A stretch of DNA of 64,000 nucleotides from Selaginella moellendorffii. Its lineage: Eukaryota; Plantae; Lycopodiophyta. Where the stretch lies: contig NW_003314295.1 in the NCBI RefSeq assembly GCF_000143415.4, forward strand, positions 1,732,631 through 1,796,630. Direction: 5' to 3'. The notes beneath the pieces are model-generated. The model ran no database searches, was not told the DNA's origin, and was given only the letters and a program-made list of their open reading frames with translations. A program made the translations under genes and the position numbers. Position 1 is the stretch's first letter. Every line of letters begins with the position of its first letter. Below, one piece after another: positions 18,115 to 45,464 of the stretch.

Positions 18115-19167
18115 TCACGAAGATGTTCTGATCAACACAAGTGTCTGGAGCATTATCTGGACAAGGGCGCCGTACACAGCACTCGCGTAGTGCATGCCAT
18201 CGCCCGTACACCCTCTCCCACACAAGGAGCTCACCTCCTTCACGTCCAACACCCTGAAATCCCCGCCGGGGAGCGTGAGATTGCTCCTGCCCAGCTCCTC
18301 GTCGTAGCGAGACAGCAATGGCGCCGTCATCTTCTCGCGCTTGGCCGCGGTGTTGAGAAGCCCGGGCACCAGCACCGGAAGATTCAGCCAGAACAAGTGT
18401 GGCGCGCGTAGCGATCGAGCAGCCGCCGCCAAATCTCTCAAGCTGGCGCCGTAGTCGGATGGATCCGAGACGTGCAACATGTGCCACAGCCCGGCTCCCG
18501 CGATGATCACGTCCGGAGAGCGAGAGCGCGCGCTTGATCCTGATCCATTCCCGGAATGCTGGAGCTCGAGAAGCTTGCTGGTTAAGTTGGCGGCGTATGG
18601 AGCCCAGAAGAAATCCACTCTGAGGTGCTCGTCTTCCAGGGTGTGGGAGAAGTCGCTGTGGAACTTGAAGAGCTGGGATCTCACTGGCGCCGGATCCTCC
18701 AGGAGGAGCTCCAGCAGCGAGAGAAGGAAGTACCGAGCTTGGGAGTCGCCAGCCACGACAATCCACGTCCCGGACAGGAACTCGAGCGCCTCCTCCCTGT
18801 GGAGCTCTCGGAACTTGCAGGCAGAGATGGCGGCGGATCTCTTCCTCGTCCAGGCCCAGCGGATCTTCTCCTCGTCGTCGCTATCGTCGAAGAAATTGAT
18901 GGCGTAGAGGGAGTGGAGGCAGCCGAGATTGGAAGAAGATGAAGAGGAGGACGAGAGGACGAGCGAGGAGATGGTGGAGTGGAAGGAGGAGACGAGGCGC
19001 GAGAGGGATGGCGCGTAGGGAAGAATGTGGACGGCGGCGGCGAGGATGATGAAGATGATGGTGCTGAAGAAGAGGACCCTGTTGCGTGTGATGTGCCAGC
19101 CCGCCATGGCGAGCGGCGCGAACACCACAATGCTGGCCGCGAGCAGCCCCGCCGCTGCCATCACCAT
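18115..19167 (-). CDS. AXY9: ALTERED XYLOGLUCAN 9-like cell-wall O-acetylation protein, intronless
   Basis: PLAMAGWHITRNRVLFFS N-terminus, GDS motif (VAGDSQAR) and DxxH motif (DGMHY). Confidence 0.9.
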   Translation of the reverse strand: MVMAAAGLLAASIVVFAPLAMAGWHITRNRVLFFSTIIFIILAAAVHILPYAPSLSRLVSSFHSTISSLVLSSSSSSSSNLGCLHSLYAINFFDDSDDEEKIRWAWTRKRSAAISACKFRELHREEALEFLSGTWIVVAGDSQARYFLLSLLELLLEDPAPVRSQLFKFHSDFSHTLEDEHLRVDFFWAPYAANLTSKLLELQHSGNGSGSSARSRSPDVIIAGAGLWHMLHVSDPSDYGASLRDLAAAARSLRAPHLFWLNLPVLVPGLLNTAAKREKMTAPLLSRYDEELGRSNLTLPGGDFRVLDVKEVSSLCGRGCTGDGMHYASAVYGALVQIMLQTLVLIRTSS

Positions 19168-19261
19168 CGATACATGAAAGAATTTCACCTCCGATCCAGC
19201 CCGCCCAGATCACAAGAAACCCTAGGAGGAAGAACCCTAGAACTCTAGTCCCCATTGATTC

Positions 19262-20694
19262 ATGAGTGATCTCCACGCCCAGGAGCTGATTCGATCGTGC
19301 CGGGGCCTCGCGGAAGCGGTAGCGCTGCATTCCTCGCTGTGCGATCGAGTGCATCTCGGCGTCTATCTCTCCAATCTGCTGGTCCAGATGTATGGGAAAT
19401 GCGGTTGCCCCGATCGCGCGAGGGCCGTCTTCGATGGAATCCGACCCAAGAATCGCTTCTCCTGGTCCTTAATGATCACGGCGTATGTGCAGAATGGATG
19501 TTTGATCCAAGCGCAAGAGCTCTTCGATCGAATGCCTGAGAGAGACCAGACCGCGTGGAACATCATGATCTCGGCATATGCCCAAACTAGGGATCTGGAG
19601 GAAGCCCAAGAACTCTTTCAAAGGATGCCCGACAAAGATATCGTGTCGTACGGTGCCATGCTGGCGGCATATGCTGAAAATGGCCAACTGGCGCGAGCCA
19701 CCGAAATTTTTAGAATCGTGCCGTACAGGGACATGCTGATGTGGACGAGCATGCTGACAGGGTATGCCCAGGCTGGGCAAATGGGCTTGGCGAAGAATCT
19801 GTTTGGTGGCATGCCCGAGTGGGACATGGTGAGCTATACGGCCTTGCTGTGTGGATATTCTCAGAACAATGCCTCGGAAGACGCGTGGCAAGTATTTACG
19901 GCAATGCCGCGGAGGGATCTAGTAACCTGGAACGCGATGCTTGCAGCATATGCCCACAGCGGGAATCTGCTGGAGTTTGAGAGATGCTTTTGGAAGATGC
20001 CCGAATGGAGCATGGCTTCTTGGAACACGATGCTTGCCGCGTACTTCCAGGCCGGAGATTTCCAGCGTGCGTCTCAAATCTATGACTCGATGCCGCGACA
20101 CGATTTAATCTCGTCGACTACGATGCTTGAGGTGTTTACTCAGCTGGGGCTTCTGGATTCAGCGAAGAAGCTCTTTGAGACGATGGAGGAGCCTCCTGGA
20201 CAGTAATGGTGAGCGCGTATGGACGGTCGGGATTTCTTGATTACGCGAAAGCCCTGTTGGAGAGCATTCCGGAACGGAATGTGATGCCTTGTACCGCTAT
20301 GCTTGCTTGTTACGCACAAAATGGGCTTCTTGACAAGGCCAGGAGAGTTTTGGACGAGATGCCCGAGCATGACGTGGTGCCGTGGAATGCCATGCTGGCA
20401 GGATATAGTCAAGGTGGGAGGCGTGACCTGGCAAGCGAGCTCTTTCAAGCAATGCGGCTGCAAGGACTCAAATCCGACCAGATCTCTTTTACGTGCTTGT
20501 TTCTGGGATTTAGTCACGGCGGAAAGATGGAAGACGCTCTAAGATGCTTCCTTTCGATGCAAAGTGATGATGGATTGGAGCCAGTGTTGCAACAATACTG
20601 CTGCATGGTGGATCTGCTGGACAGGGCTGGACGAGAAAAGGATGCCAGGAATTTAACTGCGAGCATTCCCTTCGAAAATCTAGGAATTCACTAG
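19262..20694 (+). pseudogene. PLS-class PPR gene split by a frameshift at about 20192, with a truncated E domain
   Basis: The repeat MEE[..]SWTVMVSAY continues in a different frame (ORFs 19262-20206 and 20206-20694). Confidence 0.8.
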
Positions 20695-20742
20695 TAGAGT
20701 AAATTATCACTGGCACAAGACAAAGAACATATTCATATTGAC

Positions 20743-21180
20743 ATGCCAAAGCACAAGTTAATCTTGTGGAATATTTTGTTGACTGGGGGGGGGGGATTGG
20801 ACGAAGCAAAAGAAGTTTTTGCAAGCGTCAAAACGGGCATCTTCGCGAGTCAAAGAGAATCTTCGATGCGATGCCAAACCATGGCTTGGAACTTGGAACT
20901 CCATGTTGTGTTGACTGGATTCTTCATAAGGAAGAGGCAAAGGGCCTGTTCAATTCGAATGCCATTTGGTGACCTGGTCTCATCGCCGAGCATGCTACAC
21001 GCAACGCGCGTACGCGGAATTAAGAAGCTAGCCAGTTCTTTGCAAATATGCCAGAGCTTACTTATACTACGCCCATAATGCCACCTCGGGCAAGCTCTTG
21101 GATTTCGGAGTCCACCATGCTTGCGGCTTATGCAAAGTGTCGGGGATTCTTCCAGGCCAAGAGTTTGTTCGATCGATTTA
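20743..21180 (+). pseudogene. Condensed shadow of the PPR at 43518-45464 (or a close paralog), sense orientation
   Basis: MPKHKLILWNILL..GLDEAKEVF and MPFGDLVSSPSMLHA match MPKHNLISWNALL..GLDEAKEVF and MPFGDLVSSTSMLHA. Confidence 0.85.
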
Positions 21181-21469
21181 GTTGTACCTACTCTTAAGAC
21201 TCAACCACAACTAAGTGAACATGACTCTTAACAATTAGAGACGATCACTCTCTTTGCCGCATCGCTCAGATGACAGTGTTTGAGGAAAAGCCACTCAGTC
21301 GCGCATCTCCATTATTTTTTTTTATAAAGTATTGTCAAATAATAAAGTTATTAGCTAATAAAAGATATGACAAAATCAAGAATAAGTCCACTTAATATCC
21401 TTGTCAAAATAAAATTTAAAGCATAAAATATAATCAACACTCGCCTCCATTCCAAGAAACAAGGTTTAG

Positions 21470-21700
21470 CTCTGGTAATCAATCGAACAGACTCTTTGCA
21501 GCAAGCATGGTGTTCCACTCCACAGAGTCCTTTTTGGCCAACACAAGCTCAGGTTTTAAGACGAGAAAAAACCACGAGGAGCGAGTTCCAAGTGACCATG
21601 GATTCAAATTCCCAAGAGCTTGCTTGAGGTGGCCATTCTGGGCGTAGACAAAAACCATGGCAGTTCAGTAAGCTCTGGCATATTTGCAAAGAACTTCTTT
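21470..21700 (-). pseudogene. Second, inverted shadow of the same PPR segment
   Basis: Matches 44000-44300. Perfect 29-nt inverted repeat with 21034-21062. Confidence 0.85.
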
Positions 21701-21804
21701 AATTCTTCAACACAAAAGTGTATCGATGGATTTTAGCTTAGTACATCTTGGTGAGGTGAAAGACCTGTTCATCAAATGCCATTTGGTGTCTTTGCAGCAC
21801 TTGG

Positions 21805-22110
21805 ACGTTCCATCCACAGTGACTAAATCCCAGAAATAGAGATCTGGTCGGCTTTGAGGCCTTTCAGCCGAAAAGGTGCCCATTTTGCAGGTAATATGCA
21901 ATCATGGCATCACATTCTGCTCCGGATGGTCTCCAACAGGGCTTTTGTGTCATCATCAAGTCCTGAACACCCATACGCCCTCACCATTACTGGAAGTTGC
22001 ATCTTCTCAAAGAATCTAAGAAAAGACCTAAAACATTGTAGTCAACAAGATTAAATTGTGCCACAGCATTACCAATTTCTGGCATGGAAGTATGTGGCAG
22101 GCATCAATGC
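21805..22110 (-). pseudogene. Inverted condensed shadow of the 3' part of PPR 19262-20694
   Basis: The reverse complement contains cagtaatggtgag.gcgtatgg, aaagccctgttggaga, ccgaccagatctct and ttctgggatttagtcac, as in 20200-20530. Confidence 0.85.
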
Positions 22111-22919
22111 TTCCTTGGAAGTCTAATAGACCCATATTTACACATATTTTGCACATATAGGATAACCATCAAAACTTATATTTGATATTTAAACACTTAA
22201 TTTGAGAAAATCGTGTGGAAGAAGTTACTTTATGAAATAAGGAGACAGTGGAAGGCGCGAGAGGGACGGACTGTGGACGAAGAAGAACCTCCCAAGGGGT
22301 GCTTTATATTTTTTGGACTATTAGTTCAGGCTAAATAGTTCTGTGAATCAAAAAGTGTACAAGGTAATAAGCAATTTTTTTAAAAAATGTCTTAAGTATA
22401 CCACCCCTATGTCTTACAAATTAAAGGCCAGCCCTAAACTATTTAACAAATCAGCTAGTTTAATTCCAGTTTTTGTGTCAATTCGATTCATAACAAAAAA
22501 AGACCAATATATTAATCAAGTGAACTAAACAACTTAGAAATTGTTTAATCAACCAAAGAAAACCTTTGGAGGTTAATCCACAACAACTTGTTGGTTTTGT
22601 GACAAAAACCAACAATTTCGGTGCCCTGTAAAGGCAAATTAATCTTGGAGAAAAATGTCTGGCAAGCTTTTTACAGAACACGTCAGTGGAGAGCTTATTA
22701 TAAGTAACAAAGGATCAAGTGGAAGCTATATCTTTTCACATTGACCGAGATTCCAGTTTTTGTGAAGAAGTCTATAGTCCAAAGTGATGCGATGCATGGA
22801 AAATATGAATTCGAATGGAGGTGAACCAGATCGATAATGCACTGAGATCAAAGAATCTAACAGAATCTTTGATCTCAGCCGTTGGGAGAAAAAGGTTTGT
22901 TCCCTTGGAGATCCCAGCG

Positions 22920-23870
22920 ATGTCGATCGCGTCGCCCGCCGCAGCGAATTCATCCGCTTTGCGATCTCAGCTAGCATTGGCGCCAGCGCCGCGTCCAGTA
23001 GCAGTAGCAGCAGCAACAGCAGCAGTGTACTCTTGTGAGGTCATTTCGTCCGTCTACGAGCCCTATAATCGGGTGGCAAGGGAGACAAGGGACGAGCGCA
23101 CAAAGAGTCGCGTGATTCGCCTTCAAGAGCTTGACAATGCAGTAAAACAGTGTCTTTTGTCAGAGTTTATTGGTGGCGGTGGTGGTCGGGTCTTGGATCT
23201 GGCTTGCGGTAGACGAGGCGACATCTTCAAGCTGGATGGACTAAGAGTGCACAAATACGTGGGAGTGGACTTCTCCATGAAAGAATCAGGGAGGCCGAGG
23301 CGAGAGCTCAAGCCTGTTTGTGGAGTACGATTGTTTCTCGTCACGTTTGCCTCAAGATGTCACAGCGGAGGAACCGTATGACGCTTGCAGCTGCCAGCTT
23401 GCAATACATTACGCTGCATCCAACGAGGCTACCGCACGTACAGCCCTGTACAACATCTCGTCGTCGCTAAAGCCGGGCGGATGGTTTGTAGGCACCACCG
23501 TGGACTCGCGGGTGGTTTTGGACAAGCTAAAGAGGGTGGGCAACACGACGGTGTCCAACAGTGTGCAGCTTGAAGAAACCCGTGAACAAGGAGCTGGTGT
23601 TTGGCAACGAATACGACTTTGCACTGGAGGGCATGGTCAATGACTGCCCTGAGTACCTTGTGTTTTTGATGCGTGGGAGAAGCTTGCAAGGGAGTATGGT
23701 CTGGAGCTGGTCATGTACCAAGAATTTGCTGGCAAACTGGGCAGGAAGGTTGGCGGGCTCACAGCCGCGGAGGCAGAGGTTTTCCCCCTGTATTGCGTCT
23801 TTGCTTTCCAAAAGCTCCCCTGTATGAGCAAGAATAAGAAGCGCAAACGAAATTAATTTGGTGAAATGAA
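22920..23870 (+). pseudogene. Intronless, frameshifted mRNA cap guanine-N7 methyltransferase (RNMT/Abd1 family)
   Basis: SRVIRLQELDNAVKQCLL, VLDLACGRRGDIFK, YVGVDFS, CQLAIHYA, LKPGGWFVGTT, GNEYDFALEG.VNDCPEYLV, spread over several frames. Confidence 0.85.
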
Positions 23871-24218
23871 TGTATAAAAGTCTCTCAATCAAATCTTGTT
23901 GTTTGCAAAAGGCAGCGTTCCCTACTTTCAAGTCCCACTTCTTGGAAGCTTGCCTCCATTCGATAGCATCTTCATAAAAGGCACGTCGAGTTGTCCTAAC
24001 AATGCAGCAAAGTGCTTTAAATTCAAAGTCCACGACCATCAGCCCTGGAAAAATCTAATGGTGAAATGAAGCTGATTGATGATTTAAATTGATGGAAAAA
24101 TGAAAACTAAAGTACATGTGTGCAGGTTACAGTGCAAGATGCTAGCACATAAGGTTTCAGCTTCTGCAAGTCAAGAGTAATGTAGCTAGCGCAGAACACA
24201 GATTTTTTTCCTCGTGAT

Positions 24219-25157: not shown

Positions 25158-26947
25158 TCTAGAATGGTGGAAGCATTAAGCTACCGTAAATTGCTTTTAA
25201 GTTTTTGATAGTAATTACAAGTATTATAATGTCACTTTTAACAAAAGAGGGTTTTTTTATTGTTCATAACGTTAATTAATGTCACAACAATTGTAAAGTT
25301 CTTAGTTAACCTCATTTGCCATGATAATTCCAAACTAAATTGGTTTTTACTGTAATAACTAATTAATTGATAAGCTTTGGAGTAATTCCATTGTTCTCAA
25401 GTTGATCGACTTTCGTTATTTAGTTGCTTGATACTTTGCATGAACCTTGATGGCAAGTTAGTGAAGTATTTAATTCATTATTTGATTGTGAGTATAATTT
25501 TTTTTCTAATGAGAGTATAATTTTCATATTGGCATGGAATGCATAAATAAATTTTTTTATCTCCTTGTTAATATGAGAAAAATTTCAAATGGTAAACCAC
25601 ATATCTATATAAAAAAATTATAAAAGTTAAAATATTAATTTATTGTGAACTTTGTTTTCACTGAAAATATATCCATGGCATCCATTAAAGAATGTAAGTC
25701 CTCACAAATTTTGAGGGTAAACCTGGAAGAAGTTAGTTCTCTTCCACACCAAAAGAAGAGAGTATAAATTTAAAAGGGATGTAATGTCGTAAATTTCAAA
25801 AGTTTGCATTTCTAGAATTTTTAATTGTTATAGCAAAACATGTTTACCTCAATGTTTTTTTGGTGTAGCTTTGTACAATCGTGATGAACGAGTCTATGGC
25901 TTGTGAAAAAAACCGGAAAATTTAATTATATAAATTCCAAAAGAAATTTTTATGTAACTTTAACAATAATTTTTTTTTAATATTATTTTAGATCTTTTTT
26001 ATATTTTTATCTAGTGTGTGCTAGGTAGAATCACAAAAACTAGGTAACCCTCTAGAATGGTGGAAGCATCAAGTTACGCCACAAATTGTTCCCAAACTCT
26101 TGATAGTAGCCACAAGTGTTATAATGCTACTTTTGGCAAAAGAGGGTATTTTTATTATTCATAAGGTTATACAATTAAATTTTAGGAGTTAATGCCACAA
26201 CAATTGTAAAATTCTCAGTTAGCCTCATTTGCCATGGTAATTCCATTGTTTTCAACTATATTAATTTTTGCCGTAATAATTAATTGCTTGATAGGCTTTG
26301 GAGTAACTCCACTGTTCTTAAATTGATTGACTTTCATTACTTAGTTCCTTGATACTTTGCATGAACCTTGATGATAAGTTGGTGAAATATTTAAATCATT
26401 ATTTGATTGTTAGTGTAATTTTCTTTCCAATGAGAGTATAGTTTCCATATTGGCATGGAATGCATAAATAAATTGTTTTGTCTCCTTTTTAATATGAGAA
26501 AAATTTTAAATAGTAAACCACATATCTATATAAAAAAATTATAAAAGTTAAAATATTGATTCACTTGTGAACTTTGTTTTCACTGAAAATACATCTATGA
26601 CATCCATGGTAGAATATAAGTCCTCACAAACTTTGAGGTTAGATTTGGAATAAGTTAGCTCTCTTCCATACCAAAAGAAGAAAGTATAAATTTAAAAGGG
26701 ATGTAATGTTGTAAATTTCAAGAGTTTGCATTTCTAGGGTTTTTAATTTCTATAGAGAAATGCATTTATCTTAATGTTTTTTTTTGTGTAGCCTTGTTCA
26801 AGTGTGATAAATGAGTCTATAGCTTACGAAAATAACATAAAATTTAATTATATAAATTCCAAAATAAATTTTTATATAATTTTAATAAAAATTTAATTTT
26901 TTAATGTTATTTTAGATCTTTTTTATCTTTCTACCTAGTGTGTGCTA
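25158..26947. repeat. Tandem direct duplication of a ~880-bp AT-rich unit
   Basis: Units start ctagaatggtggaagcat (about 25159 and 26052), end ctagtgtgtgcta (about 26022 and 26947), and are collinear throughout. Confidence 0.92.
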
Positions 26948-28140
26948 ATTTATTTTTGATAGCATAAGAATGCACTTCCAATATTAAATTAAAACTATGA
27001 TCTTCGCAAAGTTTAATCATATTACATTTTAAGTAAATATACATTATGGTTATTGTTAACGAGGGGATCAGTGTTAAAATGTAAAATTATTTCTACTTTA
27101 TTTAGCATTAAAATGTAAGTCCTTTAGTATAAATAATAATAGATGTCGAACTCTCACCCAACTCATTATACCAAAATGTAAAAATCAAGAAGCCTTTTAT
27201 TGAATCACTCTTATACATTTTAATAATTGGATTTTACAAAATACTTATTTAAGAAATAAACTTTTCTCCCACTTGTTAATATTATATGCCTTTTTAATAG
27301 AAAAAAAAGATTCAAAATTGATGGTATATTAATGATTAAGGGTTGTGCATTTTTCTTCCCTAAGACTTTATAATTGAGTTAAATTTGATAAAAGTGCATA
27401 AAGGTTGATTATCTGATTTATAGCATGCCATTATTTTATGGATTTATTGTGGGTAGCTACATAATGGCCATAAAAAACTAGATAAAAAGAAATTTAATCC
27501 ATGTTTCAATTGAAAACTTTTGATCATAAATTTGTAAATTTTAAATTTTTTTTTATTATTGATTTTGTATATTTATTTTAAGCTCTCACATTACTAAACA
27601 TAAATGGTTTTAATTGTCCTTAAGGAATGCTTAGATTTTCAAGAGTACTATCAAAAGGTTCATACAACATTAGTTAATCCAGTATTCATATTTCAAATTT
27701 ATTTTAGATTTTTCATTATATTGGTCAATGTATGTTCAAATTATCTTTTATTACCATATATTACTATCTATTTAGCTTTACATCACGTGGAAAAAATTGT
27801 AAGTAACAAAAGACAGCAGTTAATTAGGGTTTAAATCTTTTTTTAATTGGTTAATTGTCTTGGGATACATTGAAGTTATCTATATACTACTTTTTGAATT
27901 AAGTAATATTAGGTTGAGTGACTTGTTTGGAAATTTTTGGTTTAATATACTAAATATAAAGGGTGAGTCGGGCTTTTGAAATTTTTAACTTCTATTTATG
28001 AAAGTATTAATTTATAAGGAAGCATAATAAATTATAAATAACAAAAGAAAAAAACTTAAGAGCAGTTTATTAGAGTTCAAACAATAAATTACAATCCAAA
28101 ACAAAAAGTTAAAGTGTCATTGGGTTTAAATAGTATTAAG

Positions 28141-28345
28141 TTGGGTAAACTAAATCTTCTATAAAATTTAAATTTAGGAACTTATACCAATCTTTATTTT
28201 CTATGCATGTATGCAAGATGAAACAGACTTAGCAACAGCAGGTGAATGAGATTGGGTAACCTTCTATAAAGTTCAAATTTAAAAACTTATACCAATTTTC
28301 ATTTTCTATGCATGTGTGTAAGAGGAGATAGACTTAGTAACAACT
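28141..28345. repeat. Two tandem ~110-bp imperfect repeats
   Basis: ttgggtaa..cttctataaa..aacttataccaat..ttttctatgcatgt..agacttag at 28141 and 28252. Confidence 0.85.
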
Positions 28346-28689
28346 GTATGTATACATATGACAAACCTAGCCAGACCTAGCTATGCATGTACATGATCAT
28401 ATACTTCCTTGTATCTTTTCCATTTATCTCATTTTCTGATTTTTTGTTTGTACCTTTGTTTTAATAATGTAAATGAGTCACATAATATTATCAAACGTAG
28501 TCAAATTTATAAATTTGATTTGCTAAGTTACAAAATTGAATGGTTTGCACCTTGCTCTTTACCATTTTTCTTTTATACTCTTGCATTCCTCTTTGAATCT
28601 CTTAGATGTGATCTTTGTGAGACAACAAATGATTGGCTTAAGAAGGAGTATCTGAATTCCTCACTTCAACGATAGAATCCGTAGTCATG

Positions 28690-29700
28690 GGCTTCCTCCA
28701 AGGGAGAAAACATTTAGCCGGGGTGACTAATAGATTCAAGCAACCAGACTATTTTCCTCCATTGTCTTCACCCAGCACTTGCCACTTTAAACTGAGATAG
28801 AGATCCTTACATCTGCCAGAGCTCTGAAAGAGGAGATCACCTCCAAGTCAAGCTCCTTCTCCAAATGTTCAATAGATAGCACATTCCTACCAAAAGGCAT
28901 TGCCACCAAAGTGGCAGAACAGCTCGATCTGCTAAATGAGATTAGTAACTGAAACAACATGGTTGTGCTATTTTGTTCACCTTTCTTGTTACACAAGAGA
29001 CTTTGAACAAGTATATCATCTCGTATAGCTGCCGCTCACTCAAGTACTAACCAAGAAAAGCTTGCAGCATACCATTTTATCCATGCTCTTCACCATCTGA
29101 CAAAGAAGACCAAAATTACCTTGAAGAAACAGCAAGAGCTCATTTCTTTTAATCATTACTGTAAGCGCATCCATAGGATATAAAATGTAGCTCAGAGTCT
29201 CACCTATTCAGATAATTGCCAAGTGTAAGTTCCGGGAAACAGTGGGACTGGACGAGTAGGCGAACAAGTGATTGATCTCCACGGACTTGTGACAAAAACC
29301 AGTTTTCATTTTCACGGCCGGATCTCTGCCATGCCACAAAAGATACTCATATGGCAAAAGAACTCCCAGCACCTCCAGCATCTGTGGTACCACCACGGAG
29401 TCAAGTAGGTTTGAAAACCGAAGTACCTGCGGCACAAGAATCAACGCGTTGCAAATTTGCACAGACAGTACCTCTGGATCATACGTATCTGGCATGAATG
29501 TTCAGTATTGTAACTTGAGAACCTGTACCTGTGGATGAAAGTAGAGTAAACAAACACAAAAGAGCATAGAAATGGCCAGCACCTTTGCAAGAAGATAAGA
29601 AAGAGAACCCTCACATAGTGCACGAGACAATCAATCAGCTGCAAACGTTTTCCAGAAGCACCGTAGAGAAAACCTCAGAGCTTTATGAGCGAAAAGAGAA
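28690..29700 (-). pseudogene. Remnant of an unidentified multi-exon gene
   Basis: Series of short exon-like segments with GT..AG borders on the minus strand (e.g. VLRFSNLLDSVVVPQMLE) but with in-frame stops. Confidence 0.35.
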
Positions 29701-29702
29701 GT

Positions 29703-30075
29703 TCATCTCACCGCTCCACAGGTCGACGGCAAGAGATGTTCCAGCTTATGCCGCTGACAGATACAAGTATAGAGATTTTCGACGTCCATGCCATCTGGTT
29801 GTGCTCTTGCATGTTCTCGTAAGTGCTCTTCAAATCTGTAACACCAACGTAAAGCATTCCAGGACACGACATTTCTCTCTGGCATGTGGGCAAACGTTTT
29901 CAAAGCTTTATCGATATTCCCGCAATCGGCATAAGCTGACAGCATAGAGTCCATGCCAGGCGACTTCTCTCCACCATAGAGTCGAGCACAAGCTCAGATT
30001 GCTTGAGGCTGCTGCTTTGGGCGTACGCAGCCAACATGGCGTTTCTGACGGACGCCCTCAAACATTTCTGGGGAT
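29703..30075 (-). pseudogene. Shadow of PPR 43518-45464 (segment about 44750-45240)
   Basis: SMLSAYADCGNIDKALKTFAHMPERNVVSWNAL versus SMLSAYAHCGHLDKAEKTFTHMPERNVVSWNAL. Confidence 0.85.
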
Positions 30076-30110
30076 GTCCTGAACAAGGTGCCAAATGTAG
30101 ACATTCCTGG

Positions 30111-30916
30111 CGAGCTTCTCGCCGTAGCAAGAGTGTCTTCTCGCGCTTGGTTGAGAAGCCCAAGCAATTGCGCTTGATCCTGATCCATTCCCGGAGTGTG
30201 GAGCTCGAGAAGCTCGGTGGTTAAGTTGGTGCTCGTCCTCCAGGGTGTGGGAGAAGTCACTGAAGGTGCGAGAGGGATGGACTGTGGACAAAGAAGAGGA
30301 CCCTGTTGCAGGTCATGTGCCAGCCGCGGCGCAAACACCACAATGCTGGCCAAGACATGAAAGACTTTCACAGATCTGGGGAGGACGAGCAACCCTGTGA
30401 TTCGTGATTAATCAGGAGCTCATTTGCATCTCGGTGTCCATATCTCTCCAATTAGCTCGTCCAGATGTATGGGCTATGTGGCAGCCGCGAGGGGTGGAAT
30501 TCGACCCAAGAATTGCTTCTCCTGGTCCGCGAAATGCTTGCTGCATATGCCCACATCGGGGATCTGGTAGACTTTGAGACATTCTGGAAGATGCATTGCT
30601 TCTTTGAACACGATGCCTACCGCGTGAGATTGGCCAGCGTGCCTCAAATCTATGACTACCTCGAGCATGGTAGTCGACGAGATTAATCGTGCCGGACGGT
30701 AATGGCGAGCGCGTATGGATGTTCGGGACTTGATGACGACACGAAAGCCCTGTTGAATGAACACAGTGTGATGCCGTGATTGCATGTTACTGGCATCTAC
30801 AAGACCTCAAAGCCGACCAGATCTCTTTTACGTGCTTGTTTCTGGGATTTAGTCACTGCGGAAGGATGGAAGATGCGGAAGGATAGAAGACGCTTTAAGA
30901 TGCTTCCTCTCGATGC
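30111..30916 (+). pseudogene. Collinear condensed copy of 18291-20560 (AXY9, shared promoter and PPR)
   Basis: Ordered blocks match 18291, 18529, 18623, 18994, 19068, 19172, 19350, 19933, 20198 and 20461. Confidence 0.92.
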
Positions 30917-31164
30917 TCGTGGAACGCTCTAAACGGGAGCAAAAGGAGTTTTCGATCGCAAACCATAGCTTAGTAACTTAGAACTCCATCTTGGCTGGGT
31001 TTGTCATCTGAAAGAGGCAAAGCCTTCTTATCTTGGAACTCGCTCCTCTGTCGTCGCAAAACAGGATGCTGTGAAATGCTGAGCTTGTGTTTGAAGAGAT
31101 GGCCAAGGGACTCTATGGTGTGACCATGCAGATGAGAGCAGGGAACGCTGCCTCTTAACAAAGT

Positions 31165-31810
31165 TTAATTGAGAGGCTTTTATTTCACCAAATTAGTTTC
31201 GTTTGCGCTTCTTATTCTTGCTCATACAGAGGAGCTTTTGGAAAGCAAAGACGCAATACAGGGGGAAAACCTCTGCCTCCGCGGCTGTGAGCCCGCTCAG
31301 CCTGTGCTTGCCAGGAAATTCTTGGAAATTGGCAGGCATGACCAGCTCCAGACCATACTCCCTTGCAAGCTTCTCCCACGCATAAAAAAACACAAGGTAC
31401 TCAGGGCAGTCAATGACCACGCCCTCCAGTGCAAAGTCGTATTCGTTGTCGTGTTGCCCACCCTCTTTAGCTTGTCCAAAACCACCCGTGGTGCCTACAA
31501 ACCATCCGCCCGGCTTTAGCGACGACGAGATGTTGTACAGGGCTGTACGTGCGGTAGCCTCGTTGGATGCAGCGTAATGTATTGCAAGCTGGCAGCTGGA
31601 AGCGTCATACGGTCCCTCCGCTGTGACATCTTGAGGCAAACGTGACGAGAAACAATCGTACTCCACAAACTTGGCTCTCATAGCTCTTAGGGCTTGAGCT
31701 CTCGCCTCGGCCTCCCTGATTCTTTCATGGAGAAGTCCACTCCCAAATATTCACTCCTAGTCCATCCAGCTTATTGCCTCCGCTACCGCAAGCCAGATCC
31801 AAAACCCTGC
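31165..31810 (-). pseudogene. Second mRNA cap methyltransferase pseudogene, an inverted copy of 23185-23890
   Basis: Long near-identical stretches (EYDCFSSRLPQDVTAE..CQLAIHYAASNEATARTALYNISSSLKPGGWFVGTT). Confidence 0.9.
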
Positions 31811-32652
31811 AATAAGCCATCAATGAAAATAAACTATCACTAAAGATTGTCAATCACTTTTTTATTAGAGATGCATAGTTATTATTTAAAAATAATTCAC
31901 TTGGTGAATGACAAATTATTCATTATCAATCAAGAAAAACTTCTAATAAAAAATGATAATCAATTATCACCAAAAATAACAAGATGAGGAAATTAACTCA
32001 AACATCAAATCTAATGAGCTATCCATAAAAGCACAATGATAAACTAGATGATCTGTAAAATATCAGGAGCCAAAACATTTAAAGTCTTGAAAAGCCACTA
32101 TAGAGACAACAATTATTGAACACTGCTCAGAGACAAAATTTACAATTGCAAAAAACATTGCTAAGCCAAATTCACTTGGTGCTTAAGAAAGTTCATAAAT
32201 TATAAACTGAAATAAATGAATTTCCTAGAACCCCATTTAGCCCTGTGGATGGCAAGGAAGGATTGAATGCCAAGGCGCGCAGTGGCAGCATTGATGCTGC
32301 AGCCATAACATTAACCCTGCAAAATATAAAATATTTGGAAGCTCATACTTGTCTATTGCCTTGTGTCCAAAAAAATATATGTATATTTTAAGAACTCACT
32401 ATTGTTCACAAAAATCTGTGTGGCCTATTCTCAAAAATATCTTGGGAAAGAATGTTAATTTACAGAGAAAAAGTATTTTTAAATTTTTGGCCTCTGCAGA
32501 GAGAAGGAAAATTTTGATTAGAATTTCCCAACCATTTTGACTGACCACATTTATTATTCTATTGACTCCAAGTGCACATACATATGCCAAGTTGGAGGAC
32601 ACCATAAGAACACAAAAAGGGCAAGTAACTCGGAGTGTCTCTGCTTTGCTTC

Positions 32653-34722
32653 ATGAGTTCAGGCATAGTGATTGTTCTTCTCGTTTTTTGCTTCATCTGC
32701 TCTTTCTCGAATGCAAAAGAGGAGTCATCTGTGCTTTTGAGCTTCAAAAACTCTGTGGACGATCCATCTAAAACTCTGTCCAGCTGGAATACAAGTGTTA
32801 ACTTCTGCCAGCACTGGAACGGCATAGCCTGCACGGCGAAAGGCCGAGTTTCCATTCTTGCACTTGAGAATTTAGCACTTCCAGGGTCGCTCTTGGTTTC
32901 CACAATCAACTCTTTGCCCTTCTTACTCGAGCTATCTGTCTTGGGAAGCAACTTCACTGATGCTTTGAATTCCTCCAAACAAGCCTGCTCACTTGAGTTG
33001 ATCAAACTGTCGGGTAATCAAAACATGTCTTTCACGACCAATTTTGATGCTATGCTAGTCTGCAAAGGTCTAAAGATTCTCAATCTTTCAAACAATCAAA
33101 TTGAGGGTAAGATTCAGGTGCCAATAGGCAGCGTTTTGGAAGTAATGGATCTCTCCAACAACTTATTTAGTGGGGAGCTTCCCCACTTACTGTTTTCACA
33201 GTGCAAGAGATTGAGATATCTAGACCTCTCCCACAATCATCTCACCGGAGAACTTCCAGAGGATCTTTTTAAAAATTGTACTAATCTGCAGCAAATCTCT
33301 CTGGCCTCCAACAGCTTCCGTGGCACATCATTTCCCTCTATTCACTCCTTGCCATCGCTAGAATTTCTCGACGCTAGCTTCAACAACTTCACAGGTCCGG
33401 TTCCTGCAATTCATGAGAACCTCAAGCATCTTAATCTTAGCTCAAACAATTTCAGCACAACCAGGGAAACCTTATGTCCATCGCTCAACTCCTCGAGGCT
33501 GGAGAGCTTGATCCTGGTCAACAACAAGCTCACCGGAAGGGTATTGGACAGCGTCATGAATTGCTCTAGCCTTAGGATGTTGGATTTGAGCTTCAATTCG
33601 TTAACAGGAGAGATTCCAAGCAGCATATGCAAACAACTTCCCAAGCTCGAGCACTTTCTCGCGTGGGTAAACAACCTCCAGGGGCAGCTTCCCCAAAACC
33701 TTGCATCGTGCAGTAACCTCACCGAGATCATCCTCACTTTCAACAATCTCAGTGGAAACATTCCACCTGAGCTGTTGTCCAGCACAAAGAGCCTCCAATG
33801 GTTATGCTTGAGTAATAACAGATTGAGTGGAGAGTTGCCTGATTCATTGGAGCATGCAAAGGAGATGATAGTGCTTCAGCTGAGCAACAACAGCCTGCAG
33901 GGCAAACTGCCCAGCAACATGACCATGCAGACGATAGATCTCCGTGGAAACAGCTTGAGCGGGAGGATTTCAGCCTCTTTGAATGGTTTCACAGGCACCA
34001 AATCTGCCAAATCCAACGTTGCTGGGACGAGCTTGAAGCTAGCAACAGGGATAAAAACATGTGGTTGCATCGACAACATTTTTATCTTACAAGGAATCTC
34101 TTTGGAAGAAATGGAGAGGCTACTTTCTGCCAAGAGCGGTGGCTGCAAATGCTCCATAAGTTTCCTTCCAGCAAGCTTTTATGGTTTCTCCACCACCAGC
34201 CCTTCCTTCATCGATGTTTCATTCAATAGACTGGTGGGAGACATCCCGCGGGAGCTTGGGAGCATGCAGGACGCCAATTACCTCAGTGTTGCACATAACT
34301 TCCTGTCCGGAACAATCCCCGTGGAGCTCGGGTATCTCAAGAAAGTGATAGGGATGGACTTGTCATTCAATGATCTCCAAGGAAGCATTCCAAGCTCGTT
34401 TTCGTCTCTCCAGTCCCTCACAGGGTTGAATGTGTCGCATAACAACTTGTCCGGTCCAATTCCACAGGGTGGTCAGCTTTGGACACTTGATCCGAGCAGC
34501 TATGCAGGAAATGCCGGTCTGTGTGGTTTCCCTCTAGCGTCATGCATCACATCACCACCAACAGCGACGAATCGTGCTGACCATGGCGATGGCGATGGTG
34601 GATTGGGAGCAGTTCTTGCGGTGAGCTTTGCAATTGGGGTGCTGGTCTCGGTTATCTCCTGTACAATGGTAGTCACCATTGATAGTAGGAAACGCTTTGT
34701 GGAGAGAGCTTGCTATGGATGA
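32653..34722 (+). CDS. Intronless LRR receptor-like protein (signal peptide, LRRNT, LRRs, island domain, 4 LRRs, Cys cap, TM, short tail; no kinase)
   Basis: LLSFK..DP..LSSW..C.HWNGIAC cap, LxxLxLSxNxLxGxIP repeats, GNAGLCGFPL, TM LGAVLAVSFAIGVLVSVI. Confidence 0.93.
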   Translation: MSSGIVIVLLVFCFICSFSNAKEESSVLLSFKNSVDDPSKTLSSWNTSVNFCQHWNGIACTAKGRVSILALENLALPGSLLVSTINSLPFLLELSVLGSNFTDALNSSKQACSLELIKLSGNQNMSFTTNFDAMLVCKGLKILNLSNNQIEGKIQVPIGSVLEVMDLSNNLFSGELPHLLFSQCKRLRYLDLSHNHLTGELPEDLFKNCTNLQQISLASNSFRGTSFPSIHSLPSLEFLDASFNNFTGPVPAIHENLKHLNLSSNNFSTTRETLCPSLNSSRLESLILVNNKLTGRVLDSVMNCSSLRMLDLSFNSLTGEIPSSICKQLPKLEHFLAWVNNLQGQLPQNLASCSNLTEIILTFNNLSGNIPPELLSSTKSLQWLCLSNNRLSGELPDSLEHAKEMIVLQLSNNSLQGKLPSNMTMQTIDLRGNSLSGRISASLNGFTGTKSAKSNVAGTSLKLATGIKTCGCIDNIFILQGISLEEMERLLSAKSGGCKCSISFLPASFYGFSTTSPSFIDVSFNRLVGDIPRELGSMQDANYLSVAHNFLSGTIPVELGYLKKVIGMDLSFNDLQGSIPSSFSSLQSLTGLNVSHNNLSGPIPQGGQLWTLDPSSYAGNAGLCGFPLASCITSPPTATNRADHGDGDGGLGAVLAVSFAIGVLVSVISCTMVVTIDSRKRFVERACYG

Positions 34723-43517: not shown

Positions 43518-45464
43518 CTACCTCGTTGTTTGCAAACGAGGTAGTTTGATTGGAGCAAGGAAGTTCGACACCAGCACATAGTTTGCAGCTTCTTCTGTTT
43601 GTAGAGACGCTACGTTCCCTGCTACTCGACTCCCTCCACGGAGATCATTCTTGGAAGCTCCAAGAACACATCTCCATTCCATAGCATCCGGCACAAAAGG
43701 CATGTTCTTTACCAGATCGTGGGCCTCGTCGAGGTGTCCAGCCCGTCCTAGCACGTCGATCATGCAGCAAAAGTGCTGCTTCCCAGGTCTAATCCCAAAG
43801 TCCACCACCATCGAAACGAAGAAACCGATAGCAATCTCCACGGTGCCCCCGTGACAGCACGCAACGTAAACGGACACAAAGCTCGTCTCGTCCGGCATCG
43901 CCAAGAGCTTCATGGTGCTGAAAAAGTCGAGAGCATCGCCAAAGAGTCCATTACAAGAGTAAGCGACGAGCATGGCATTCAGAGCAACAAGGTTCTGCTC
44001 TGGTAATCGATCGAACAGACTCTTGGCCTGCAAGAACCGCCCACACTTTGCATAAGTCGCAAGGATGGTGTTCCACGACACAGAGTCCCTCTCGGCCATC
44101 TCTTCAAAAACAAACTCGGCGTGTCGCAGCATCCCGTTTTGCGAGAAGCCGCAGAGCAGCGAGTTCCAAGTGACCACATTCTTCTCGGGCATTTTTCCAA
44201 GCAATCCAAGGGCTTGCTCGATGTGGCCATTCTGGGCGTAGGCAGTAAGCATGGCCGTCCAAGTAACTACGGTAAGCTCTGGCATGTTTGCAAAGAACCG
44301 GCTAGCTTCTTCCACGTACCCGCGCGACGCATAAGCGTGTAGCATGCTCGTCGATGAGACCAAGTCCCCAAATGGCATTCGATCGAACAGACACTTCGCC
44401 TCTTCCAGATGATCAGCTTGGACGAATCCAGCCAACATGGAGTTCCAAGTTACCAAGCTATGGTTTGGCATCGCATCGAAGATCTTCTTTGCATCGCGGA
44501 GATGCCCGTTTTGAGCGCTCGCTCCAAGCATCGTCGTCCAGGACACAAGATTCTTCTCCGGCATGCGCTTGAAAACCTCTTTTGCTTCGTCCAAGCCCTC
44601 ATTCAGCGCAGTCGCAGACAACAAAGCGTTCCACGAGATTAAGTTGTGCTTCGGCATGTCATTGAATACGTTCTTTGTCTCGCCCAAGTGACCGTTTTGG
44701 CCATATCCAGTAAGCATGGCATTCCACGACGCCAAATCCCTCAACCCCATCTCATCAAACAAGCGCTTGGCGCCCTCCACATCGGCGGCCTGGGAATAAG
44801 CCGAGAGCATCGCGTTCCAGCTTACCAGGTTCTTCTCCGGCATGCCGCTGAACAAGATACTCGCCTCCGACAGATGCCCACGCCGGGCAAGTGCAGAGAT
44901 CATCGATGTCCACGTCACCTGGTTGTGCTCCGGCATTTTTTCGTACGTGCGCTTTGCATCTTCAAAGATGGCGTGCTGGGAGTAGCAGCAAAGTAGAGCA
45001 TTCCAAGATACCACATTTCTTTCTGGCATGTGCGTAAACGTTTTCTCAGCTTTATCGAGATGCCCACAATGGGCATAAGCTGACAGCATCGAGGTCCACG
45101 TCAGAAGATTCCGCTCCGGCATCGTGTCAAACACCCCTTCGGCCTGATTAAGTTTGCTGCTTTGGGCGTACGCAGCCAACATGGCATTCCACGTAATCAC
45201 GTCTCTAACCGGGACGCCCTCAAACACCTCTCGGGCGTTTTGCAGATGCCCGTTCTGGGCATATGCAGCCAGCATCGCCGTCCACGTCGTCACGTCCCGG
45301 CACGGGCACTGGTCAAAGATCTCCTTCGCCCGCTCGACCTGCCCAACTCGGGCGTAAGTCGATATCATCGAATTCCAGTTCAGTGGATCGCTGTTAGAGC
45401 TGTCGGGGAGAACCCGGTTCGCCATGCCCAAGCTCCCAATCTCGCCTCTCTTGAGTTGGGCCAT
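43518..45464 (-). CDS. Intronless PLS-E PPR protein
   Basis: 31-aa repeats and E domain HFCCMIDVLGRAGHL..MPFVPD..W..LGAS. Confidence 0.93.
   Translation of the reverse strand: MAQLKRGEIGSLGMANRVLPDSSNSDPLNWNSMISTYARVGQVERAKEIFDQCPCRDVTTWTAMLAAYAQNGHLQNAREVFEGVPVRDVITWNAMLAAYAQSSKLNQAEGVFDTMPERNLLTWTSMLSAYAHCGHLDKAEKTFTHMPERNVVSWNALLCCYSQHAIFEDAKRTYEKMPEHNQVTWTSMISALARRGHLSEASILFSGMPEKNLVSWNAMLSAYSQAADVEGAKRLFDEMGLRDLASWNAMLTGYGQNGHLGETKNVFNDMPKHNLISWNALLSATALNEGLDEAKEVFKRMPEKNLVSWTTMLGASAQNGHLRDAKKIFDAMPNHSLVTWNSMLAGFVQADHLEEAKCLFDRMPFGDLVSSTSMLHAYASRGYVEEASRFFANMPELTVVTWTAMLTAYAQNGHIEQALGLLGKMPEKNVVTWNSLLCGFSQNGMLRHAEFVFEEMAERDSVSWNTILATYAKCGRFLQAKSLFDRLPEQNLVALNAMLVAYSCNGLFGDALDFFSTMKLLAMPDETSFVSVYVACCHGGTVEIAIGFFVSMVVDFGIRPGKQHFCCMIDVLGRAGHLDEAHDLVKNMPFVPDAMEWRCVLGASKNDLRGGSRVAGNVASLQTEEAANYVLVSNFLAPIKLPRLQTTR

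Follow-up and report, generated by a model that had tools for sequence, protein, structure and literature searches.

One proposed explanation of compact genomes is that non-functional DNA has a short half-life, with a bias towards deletions and with deletions of medium size. In Drosophila, Petrov and colleagues reportedly described how dead-on-arrival elements and pseudogenes lose DNA neutrally. Among repair routes, polymerase-theta-type end joining leaves templated insertions. Selaginella moellendorffii has a small genome and has undergone no whole-genome duplication.

Two published cases of DNA loss in plants are close to the locus described here. In maize, duplicate genes are lost through the accumulation of deletions of 5-178 bp, and direct repeats of 3-24 bp flank 10 of 16 such deletions (Woodhouse et al., 2010, PMC2893956). 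Removal of DNA by illegitimate recombination is ascribed in that paper to Devos et al. (2002). In Selaginella lepidophylla, haplotype-specific deletions of 4.8-85 kb, which fall mostly on LTR retrotransposons, have been described as 'bloat and purge' (VanBuren et al., 2018, PMC5750206).

The window, that is, the whole stretch of 64,000 nucleotides that was analysed, belongs to Selaginella moellendorffii scaffold GL377599.1 (assembly GCA_000143415.2, in which both haplotypes are assembled). It holds an eroded copy, called shadow B, of a segment that comprises an AXY9-like gene, the pentatricopeptide repeat (PPR) gene PPR1 and the upstream DNA that the two share (Table 1). Shadow B is most probably a non-processed pseudogene fragment, a DNA-level copy that decays neutrally under strong deletion bias, and a special shredding system for duplicates is not supported. 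Among published cases, the loss of duplicate genes by short deletions (PMC2893956) is its nearest counterpart: here as in maize, a redundant copy is removed piecemeal while still collinear with its intact partner, the size ranges of the deletions overlap and there are several deletions per gene. Shadow B is a local segmental duplicate, whereas the maize copies are homeologs from a whole-genome duplication. Its decay is also consistent with rapid DNA purging in Selaginella (PMC5750206); the two cases share the genus, heterozygous structural variation with rapid deletion and a genome of about 100 Mb, but the shadows show the 2-400-nt end of the spectrum, and show it on copies of gene fragments.

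Table 1. Features of shadow B, its parents and the neighbouring copies (positions in the window).
Feature	Position	Strand	Description
AXY9-like gene	18115-19167	-	Annotated, 350 aa; PC-esterase/TBL-like by feature search
Upstream DNA shared by AXY9-like gene and PPR1			94 nt
PPR1	19262-20694	+	PPR Pfam matches
Parent segment of shadow B	18285-20560	+	AXY9-like gene, 94-nt shared upstream region, PPR1
PPR2	43518-45464	-	Intact 648-aa PPR gene; parent of pieces b1, b3 and shadow L
Shadow B	30105-30916	+	Eroded collinear copy: AXY9-like gene, shared upstream DNA, PPR1
Inverted block in shadow B	30658-30691	-	34 nt; reverse complement of about 20101-20134
17-nt tandem duplication in shadow B	30857-30890	+	No counterpart in source or haplotype 2
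Further deletion in X1	30172-30548		377 nt; 2-nt junction overlap; X1 contig joins 30171 to 30549
Mosaic piece b1	29764-30064	+	PPR2 fragment, matches 44863-45226; 79% identity, 5 deletions
Mosaic piece b3	30953-31117	-	Eroded PPR2 fragment, matches 44473-44079
Mosaic piece b4	31133-31807	-	Inverted copy of mRNA-cap methyltransferase fragment 23188-23930 (PF03291)
ORF in piece b4	31193-31681		Annotated 162-aa gene
Copy C	21809-21992	-	Inverted fragment, 3' part of PPR1
Shadow L	20707-21178	-	Eroded PPR2 copy, matches 44691-44005

The original prediction, made from the letters of the window, described shadow B as an ordered chain of short blocks copied from 18291-20560. Such a chain is confirmed: both blastn and a global alignment that tolerates gaps, scored by log-odds and with gap costs almost independent of length, match 30105-30916 to 18285-20560 in order. 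The chain consists of 36 blocks, 27 of which are at least 10 nt long, and its alignment score of 525 compares with 2.2 ± 1.4 (maximum 5.3) for 30 shuffles of the shadow. Of about 830 shadow bases, 763 positions are aligned, at 88.5% identity; 29 gaps correspond to 1,575 nt of source removed, and six insertions add 70 nt. Self-blastn likewise resolves 30136-30916 into ordered short matches to 18330-20560, among which 30658-30686 is an inverted match to 20133-20105. The block of some 35 nt that had been said to be flipped in place is thus real. It occupies its proper place in the chain, between source positions 20087 and 20196, with a loss of parent sequence of 13 nt on one side and about 61 nt on the other, and an independent contig of run X6, covering 30549-30715, confirms it at 100% identity.

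Because the chain spans two divergent genes and the DNA between their starts, shadow B is derived from DNA, as had been proposed, and a processed pseudogene (retrocopy) is ruled out. The span once described as AXY9, divergent promoter and PPR gene holds; the name AXY9 itself reaches no further than the PC-esterase/TBL-like assignment of the feature search. The longest ORFs of shadow B, on either strand, are of 73-132 aa, and none carries on a parent frame, so that the copy combines collinearity with its parent, non-coding DNA included, with the loss of any intact reading frame, as a non-processed duplicated pseudogene does. The 17-nt tandem duplication is a recent insertion in the window haplotype, since source and haplotype 2 both lack it.

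Haplotype 2, the allelic scaffold GL377591.1, covers window positions 8105-48749 at about 95% identity; the haplotype comparisons given below refer to about 37 kb of aligned sequence in this one region. The chain is found in haplotype 2 too, where about 22 of the 29 junction pairs of shadow B recur within 3 nt, and most of the leftover differences are alternative placements of tiny blocks. The independent DNA run X1 represents a third allele of shadow B, about 2% diverged, which has some but not all of the haplotype-2 variants and carries the same junctions wherever it covers them. Contigs of run X6 (30245-30547 and 30549-30715) and of the RNA libraries X4 (30377-30637) and X10 (30430-30696) match the window with zero differences. 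With the chain present in haplotype 2, in X1 and in 100%-identity contigs of X6, X4 and X10, an assembly chimera is ruled out.

Shadow B sits within a 2-kb patchwork of local gene fragments (29764-31807) in a PPR-rich region. The patchwork runs from a PPR2 fragment (b1) through the AXY9-like/PPR1 chain to a PPR2 fragment in opposite orientation (b3) and an inverted cap-methyltransferase copy (b4). It was not copied from the 20.7-kb shadow (shadow L) in its present form, because piece b3 retains PPR2 sequence that is gone there. Similar chains recur across the window, as had been noticed at the outset: 3.9-4.1, 20.7-22.3, 29.7-31.8, 52-55.8 and 60.5-61.1 kb all give local matches. Those at 20.7-22.3 kb comprise the PPR2 copy and, inverted and more eroded, a copy of the PPR1 3' end and PPR2; the sources of those at 52-55.8 and 60.5-61.1 kb are a fourth PPR gene and a tandem pair of UDP-glycosyltransferase-like genes. 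The broader statement that shadows always copy genes of the window stands as far as local matches go, but not for an intact source gene each time, the cap-methyltransferase source (22.8-23.9 kb) being itself an unannotated fragment. This source, 22815-23930, matches Pfam profile positions 11-205 of 315 only, in two frames, and has no gene annotation in the window haplotype; it is probably a fragment of a gene sited elsewhere.

The deletions in shadow B differ in age. In a three-way alignment of parent positions 20180-20600, shadow B and copy C, the two copies depart from the parent in the same ways, by a 10-nt deletion whose ends coincide, a large deletion that is nested (about 121 nt in copy C, 138 nt in shadow B) and many substitutions, and each of them has private indels besides. 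Because of these shared deletions and substitutions, together with the private indels, both must descend from one copy that had already decayed, and both have decayed further since. Five deletions, of 2, 3, 4, 10 and 377 nt, are still polymorphic. Deleted from the window haplotype are TGC after 30581 and GC after 30640, letters that haplotype 2, X1 and the parent still have; deleted from haplotype 2 are GTGG (30284) and 10 nt (30811), both retained by the parent; and X1 has a depth of 0 across 30172-30548, a segment that haplotype 2 keeps. Haplotype 2 has also gained a 14-nt palindromic insertion in shadow B, templated from adjacent bases (snap-back). In shadow L, the old deletions are common to both haplotypes, and deletions of 22 and 10 nt are found in haplotype 2 only. 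Since the deletions of shadow B are shared with copy C, shared between haplotypes or still polymorphic, they accumulated stepwise, in at least three age layers. Of the two processes first put forward for the shortening of the copy, iterated deletion agrees with this layering and serial template skipping does not.

The density of deletions in shadow B had been regarded as exceptional and as the mark of a process aimed at local duplicates; neither view survives comparison. Gaps per source site per unit substitution divergence, counts of which vary with the alignment penalties, amount to 0.12 in shadow B and to 0.05-0.36 in the other duplicates of the window. When the haplotypes are compared, 34 indels to 117 substitutions (0.29) fall in the shadows (20695-22300 and 29764-31807) and 46 to 185 (0.25) in five nearby stretches of non-duplicated non-coding DNA from the same region, which gives an odds ratio of 1.17 (Fisher P = 0.61); indels are almost absent from coding regions. 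Extrapolated by hand, a figure of about two deletions in 0.8 kb for each lineage at 1.8% divergence agrees in order of magnitude with the 25-29 or so deletions of shadow B at 12.5% divergence. Shadow B looks extreme through a few large deletions (103-335 nt) and through substitutions being countable only in the sequence that survives. At similar divergence it has lost 67% of its DNA, compared with 17% for the adjacent methyltransferase piece b4, and this gap calls for a difference in age, for large deletions, few in number, that fell where they did by chance, or for a 162-aa ORF under weak constraint.

Microhomology-mediated deletion, also suggested at first, finds little echo at the junctions. 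At the 14 old junctions of shadow B that are robust, being clean and well flanked, the mean overlap is 0.79 nt as against 0.72 nt by chance (P = 0.41), and the 34 recent indels between haplotypes that are 4 nt or longer show a weak excess (1.26 vs 0.74 nt, P = 0.005). The signature of illegitimate recombination between direct repeats (flanks of 2-13 or 3-24 bp) does not characterize the 14 old or the 34 recent junctions. Overlaps of at least 3 nt occur at 0 of 14 old and 5 of 34 recent junctions, in contrast to 10 of 16 in maize, and deletion sizes in Selaginella, unlike those in maize, have a mode at 8-13 nt. The molecular route may therefore differ from the maize one, since the junctions lack flanking direct repeats of 3-24 bp. 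Both the deletion:substitution ratio and the junction microhomology, on which the original prediction had staked the case for special shredding, are essentially ordinary, and this counts against it.

Deletions far outweigh insertions, as was expected of a compact genome. In nine pairs of shadow and parent, deletions number 96 (3,609 nt) and insertions 33 (653 nt), a ratio of about 3:1 by count and 5.5:1 by bases. Deletion bias, deletions of medium size and short-lived non-functional DNA are the features shared with the Drosophila work mentioned above; organism and data type differ. For the nine pairs, a small and non-random sample, the median of a rough loss rate derived by hand is about 4.7 per substitution per site, corresponding to a half-life near K of about 0.15. 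The deletions that separate shadows from parents number 31 at 8-13 nt and 7 at 4-7 nt, and the 131 haplotype indels of window positions 8105-48749 include 24 at 8-10 nt compared with 10 at 5-7 nt (binomial P = 0.012), a secondary length mode at 8-13 nt as seen in this single region. Small in-place inversions recur, with one of 34 nt in shadow B and one of 119 nt in haplotype 2.

The most probable course of events begins with duplication of the AXY9-like/PPR1 segment at the DNA level, after which the redundant copy evolved neutrally. It has lost about 67% of its length via some 25-30 independent deletions, mostly of 8-35 nt and a few of 100-335 nt. As the repair pathway we infer end joining of breaks with little or no microhomology; in-place inversion, tandem duplication and snap-back templated insertion were rare additions. 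The 14-nt snap-back insertion, the 17-nt duplication and the in-place inverted blocks resemble the templated scars of polymerase-theta-type end joining, whereas most shadow junctions are clean, with 0-2 nt overlap; judged from the sequence, that pathway is a candidate route.

The inverted block, the mosaic and the snap-back insertion of haplotype 2 imply that template-using repair acts at the locus, and the same three features, with mosaic pieces drawn from four local sources in mixed orientation, would suit an origin in one step, in which a polymerase skipped along the parent template, and once reversed on it, in a single event (MMBIR/FoSTeS or patchwork filler DNA). Such an origin is nevertheless highly unlikely for shadow B as a whole: the ages of its deletions differ, some being shared with copy C, most being common to the haplotypes and five being polymorphic, junction microhomology stays at chance level, and the number of deletions is as predicted by the polymorphism-level indel rate. 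Template switching may lie behind the inverted block and the mosaic at the kb scale, though it does not explain the shredding. That an already decayed fragment was copied again, as the common decayed ancestor of shadow B and copy C implies, is what might be seen if the mosaic at 29.76-31.81 kb were the cargo, later decayed, of a Helitron- or Pack-MULE-like element. Yet neither terminal inverted repeats flanking the mosaic nor a nearby transposase or helicase ORF was found, read depth over shadow B is that of a single copy (about 141, compared with about 128 in the flank) and every source lies within 15 kb; on these features transposon capture is improbable.

A different view would have local repeats recognized, by siRNA, methylation or pairing, and preferentially deleted or mutated. 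The numerous shadows of the window, the low-depth RNA-library contigs identical to 30377-30696 and a neighbouring AT-rich block, with a haplotype divergence of 12-17% and 76% transitions, would accord with it, as would the GC-rich segments taken by small deletions in shadow B (64% vs 57% expected, P = 0.003). This GC bias is, however, absent in the other shadows and loss of CpG-rich segments from shadow B is borderline (P = 0.057); preferential loss of GC/CpG-rich sequence is accordingly treated as unconfirmed. The view is further opposed by the indel/substitution ratio, which is no different between shadows and non-duplicated non-coding DNA (P = 0.61), and by the lack of C>T hypermutation in shadow B, where GC>AT changes number 26 and AT>GC changes 20. 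Erasure directed at duplicates is, on these grounds, extremely improbable. The substitutions of shadow B comprise 46 transitions and 39 transversions, and its CpG observed/expected ratio is 0.86; RIP-like or methylation-driven hypermutation, with neither a C>T/G>A excess nor strong CpG depletion, is ruled out for shadow B.

Neutral decay of a duplicated pseudogene thus being the preferred reading, the striking pattern is an ordinary one, and a candidate for an undescribed system is removed. The locus provides instead a small polarized sample of how neutral indels accumulate in a lycophyte with a genome of about 100 Mb, in which deletions are still segregating among alleles. It is possible, though rather doubtful, that indels in neutral DNA of Selaginella moellendorffii have an unusual spectrum, left behind by one particular route of break repair that governs its fast DNA loss. 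The features in question are the second mode at about 8-13 nt (close to one turn of the helix), junctions that are practically blunt, the excess of deletions, and recurrent inversions and snap-back insertions. If such a spectrum is real, shredded shadows would be its most visible product and not a separate system. A literature search found no published study of the indel spectrum in Selaginella, which is not proof of absence. Should both the mode at 8-13 nt and the bluntness of the junctions prove general across the genome, the explanation of Selaginella compactness by DNA loss would be directly testable.

Decay may have reached one of the parents too. At about 20192 the window haplotype lacks 10 nt of PPR1 that are present in haplotype 2, so that the frame is broken, and the gene is annotated with 278 aa in the window haplotype and 439 aa in haplotype 2. 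The haplotypes differ in PPR1 by 3.7%, which is equal to neutral DNA. Because its frame is broken here and its divergence resembles that of neutral DNA, PPR1 may itself be sliding into decay.

Several observations concern the neighbourhood of the shadows. Inside the cap-methyltransferase fragment, at 23621-23729, haplotype 2 carries the in-place inversion of about 119 nt, defined relative to the window haplotype and to the copy at 31316-31432. A haplotype-2 gene model with a methyltransferase Pfam match lies on the strand opposite to the methyltransferase-like ORFs of the window haplotype, which may reflect this inverted piece. The AT-rich block (26267-28267) has a GC content of about 25% and a CpG observed/expected ratio of 0.25; its haplotypes differ by 12-17%, compared with 2-4% in flanking non-coding DNA, and about 76% of the differences are transitions. 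These properties fit ongoing hypermutation of the C>T type within the block.

Contigs of RNA libraries from two different studies are identical to the shadow and to the methyltransferase copy, at 30245-30715 and 31342-31543. Their depth over the mosaic is low, at 3-4 compared with 14-64 for gene transcripts, which suggests that the pseudogene mosaic is weakly transcribed; carry-over of DNA is an alternative source of the contigs. In haplotype 2 (L004:14262-20406, about 28400-34700 of the window), a 395-aa gene model extends over about 6 kb, takes the whole mosaic as an intron and joins upstream DNA to an LRR receptor-like gene; it is probably an annotation artefact. Directly upstream of the LRR receptor-like gene, at 32200-32634, haplotype divergence is 9%, indels are numerous and X1 contigs link the two strands and fold back on themselves; a small hotspot of rearrangement may lie here.
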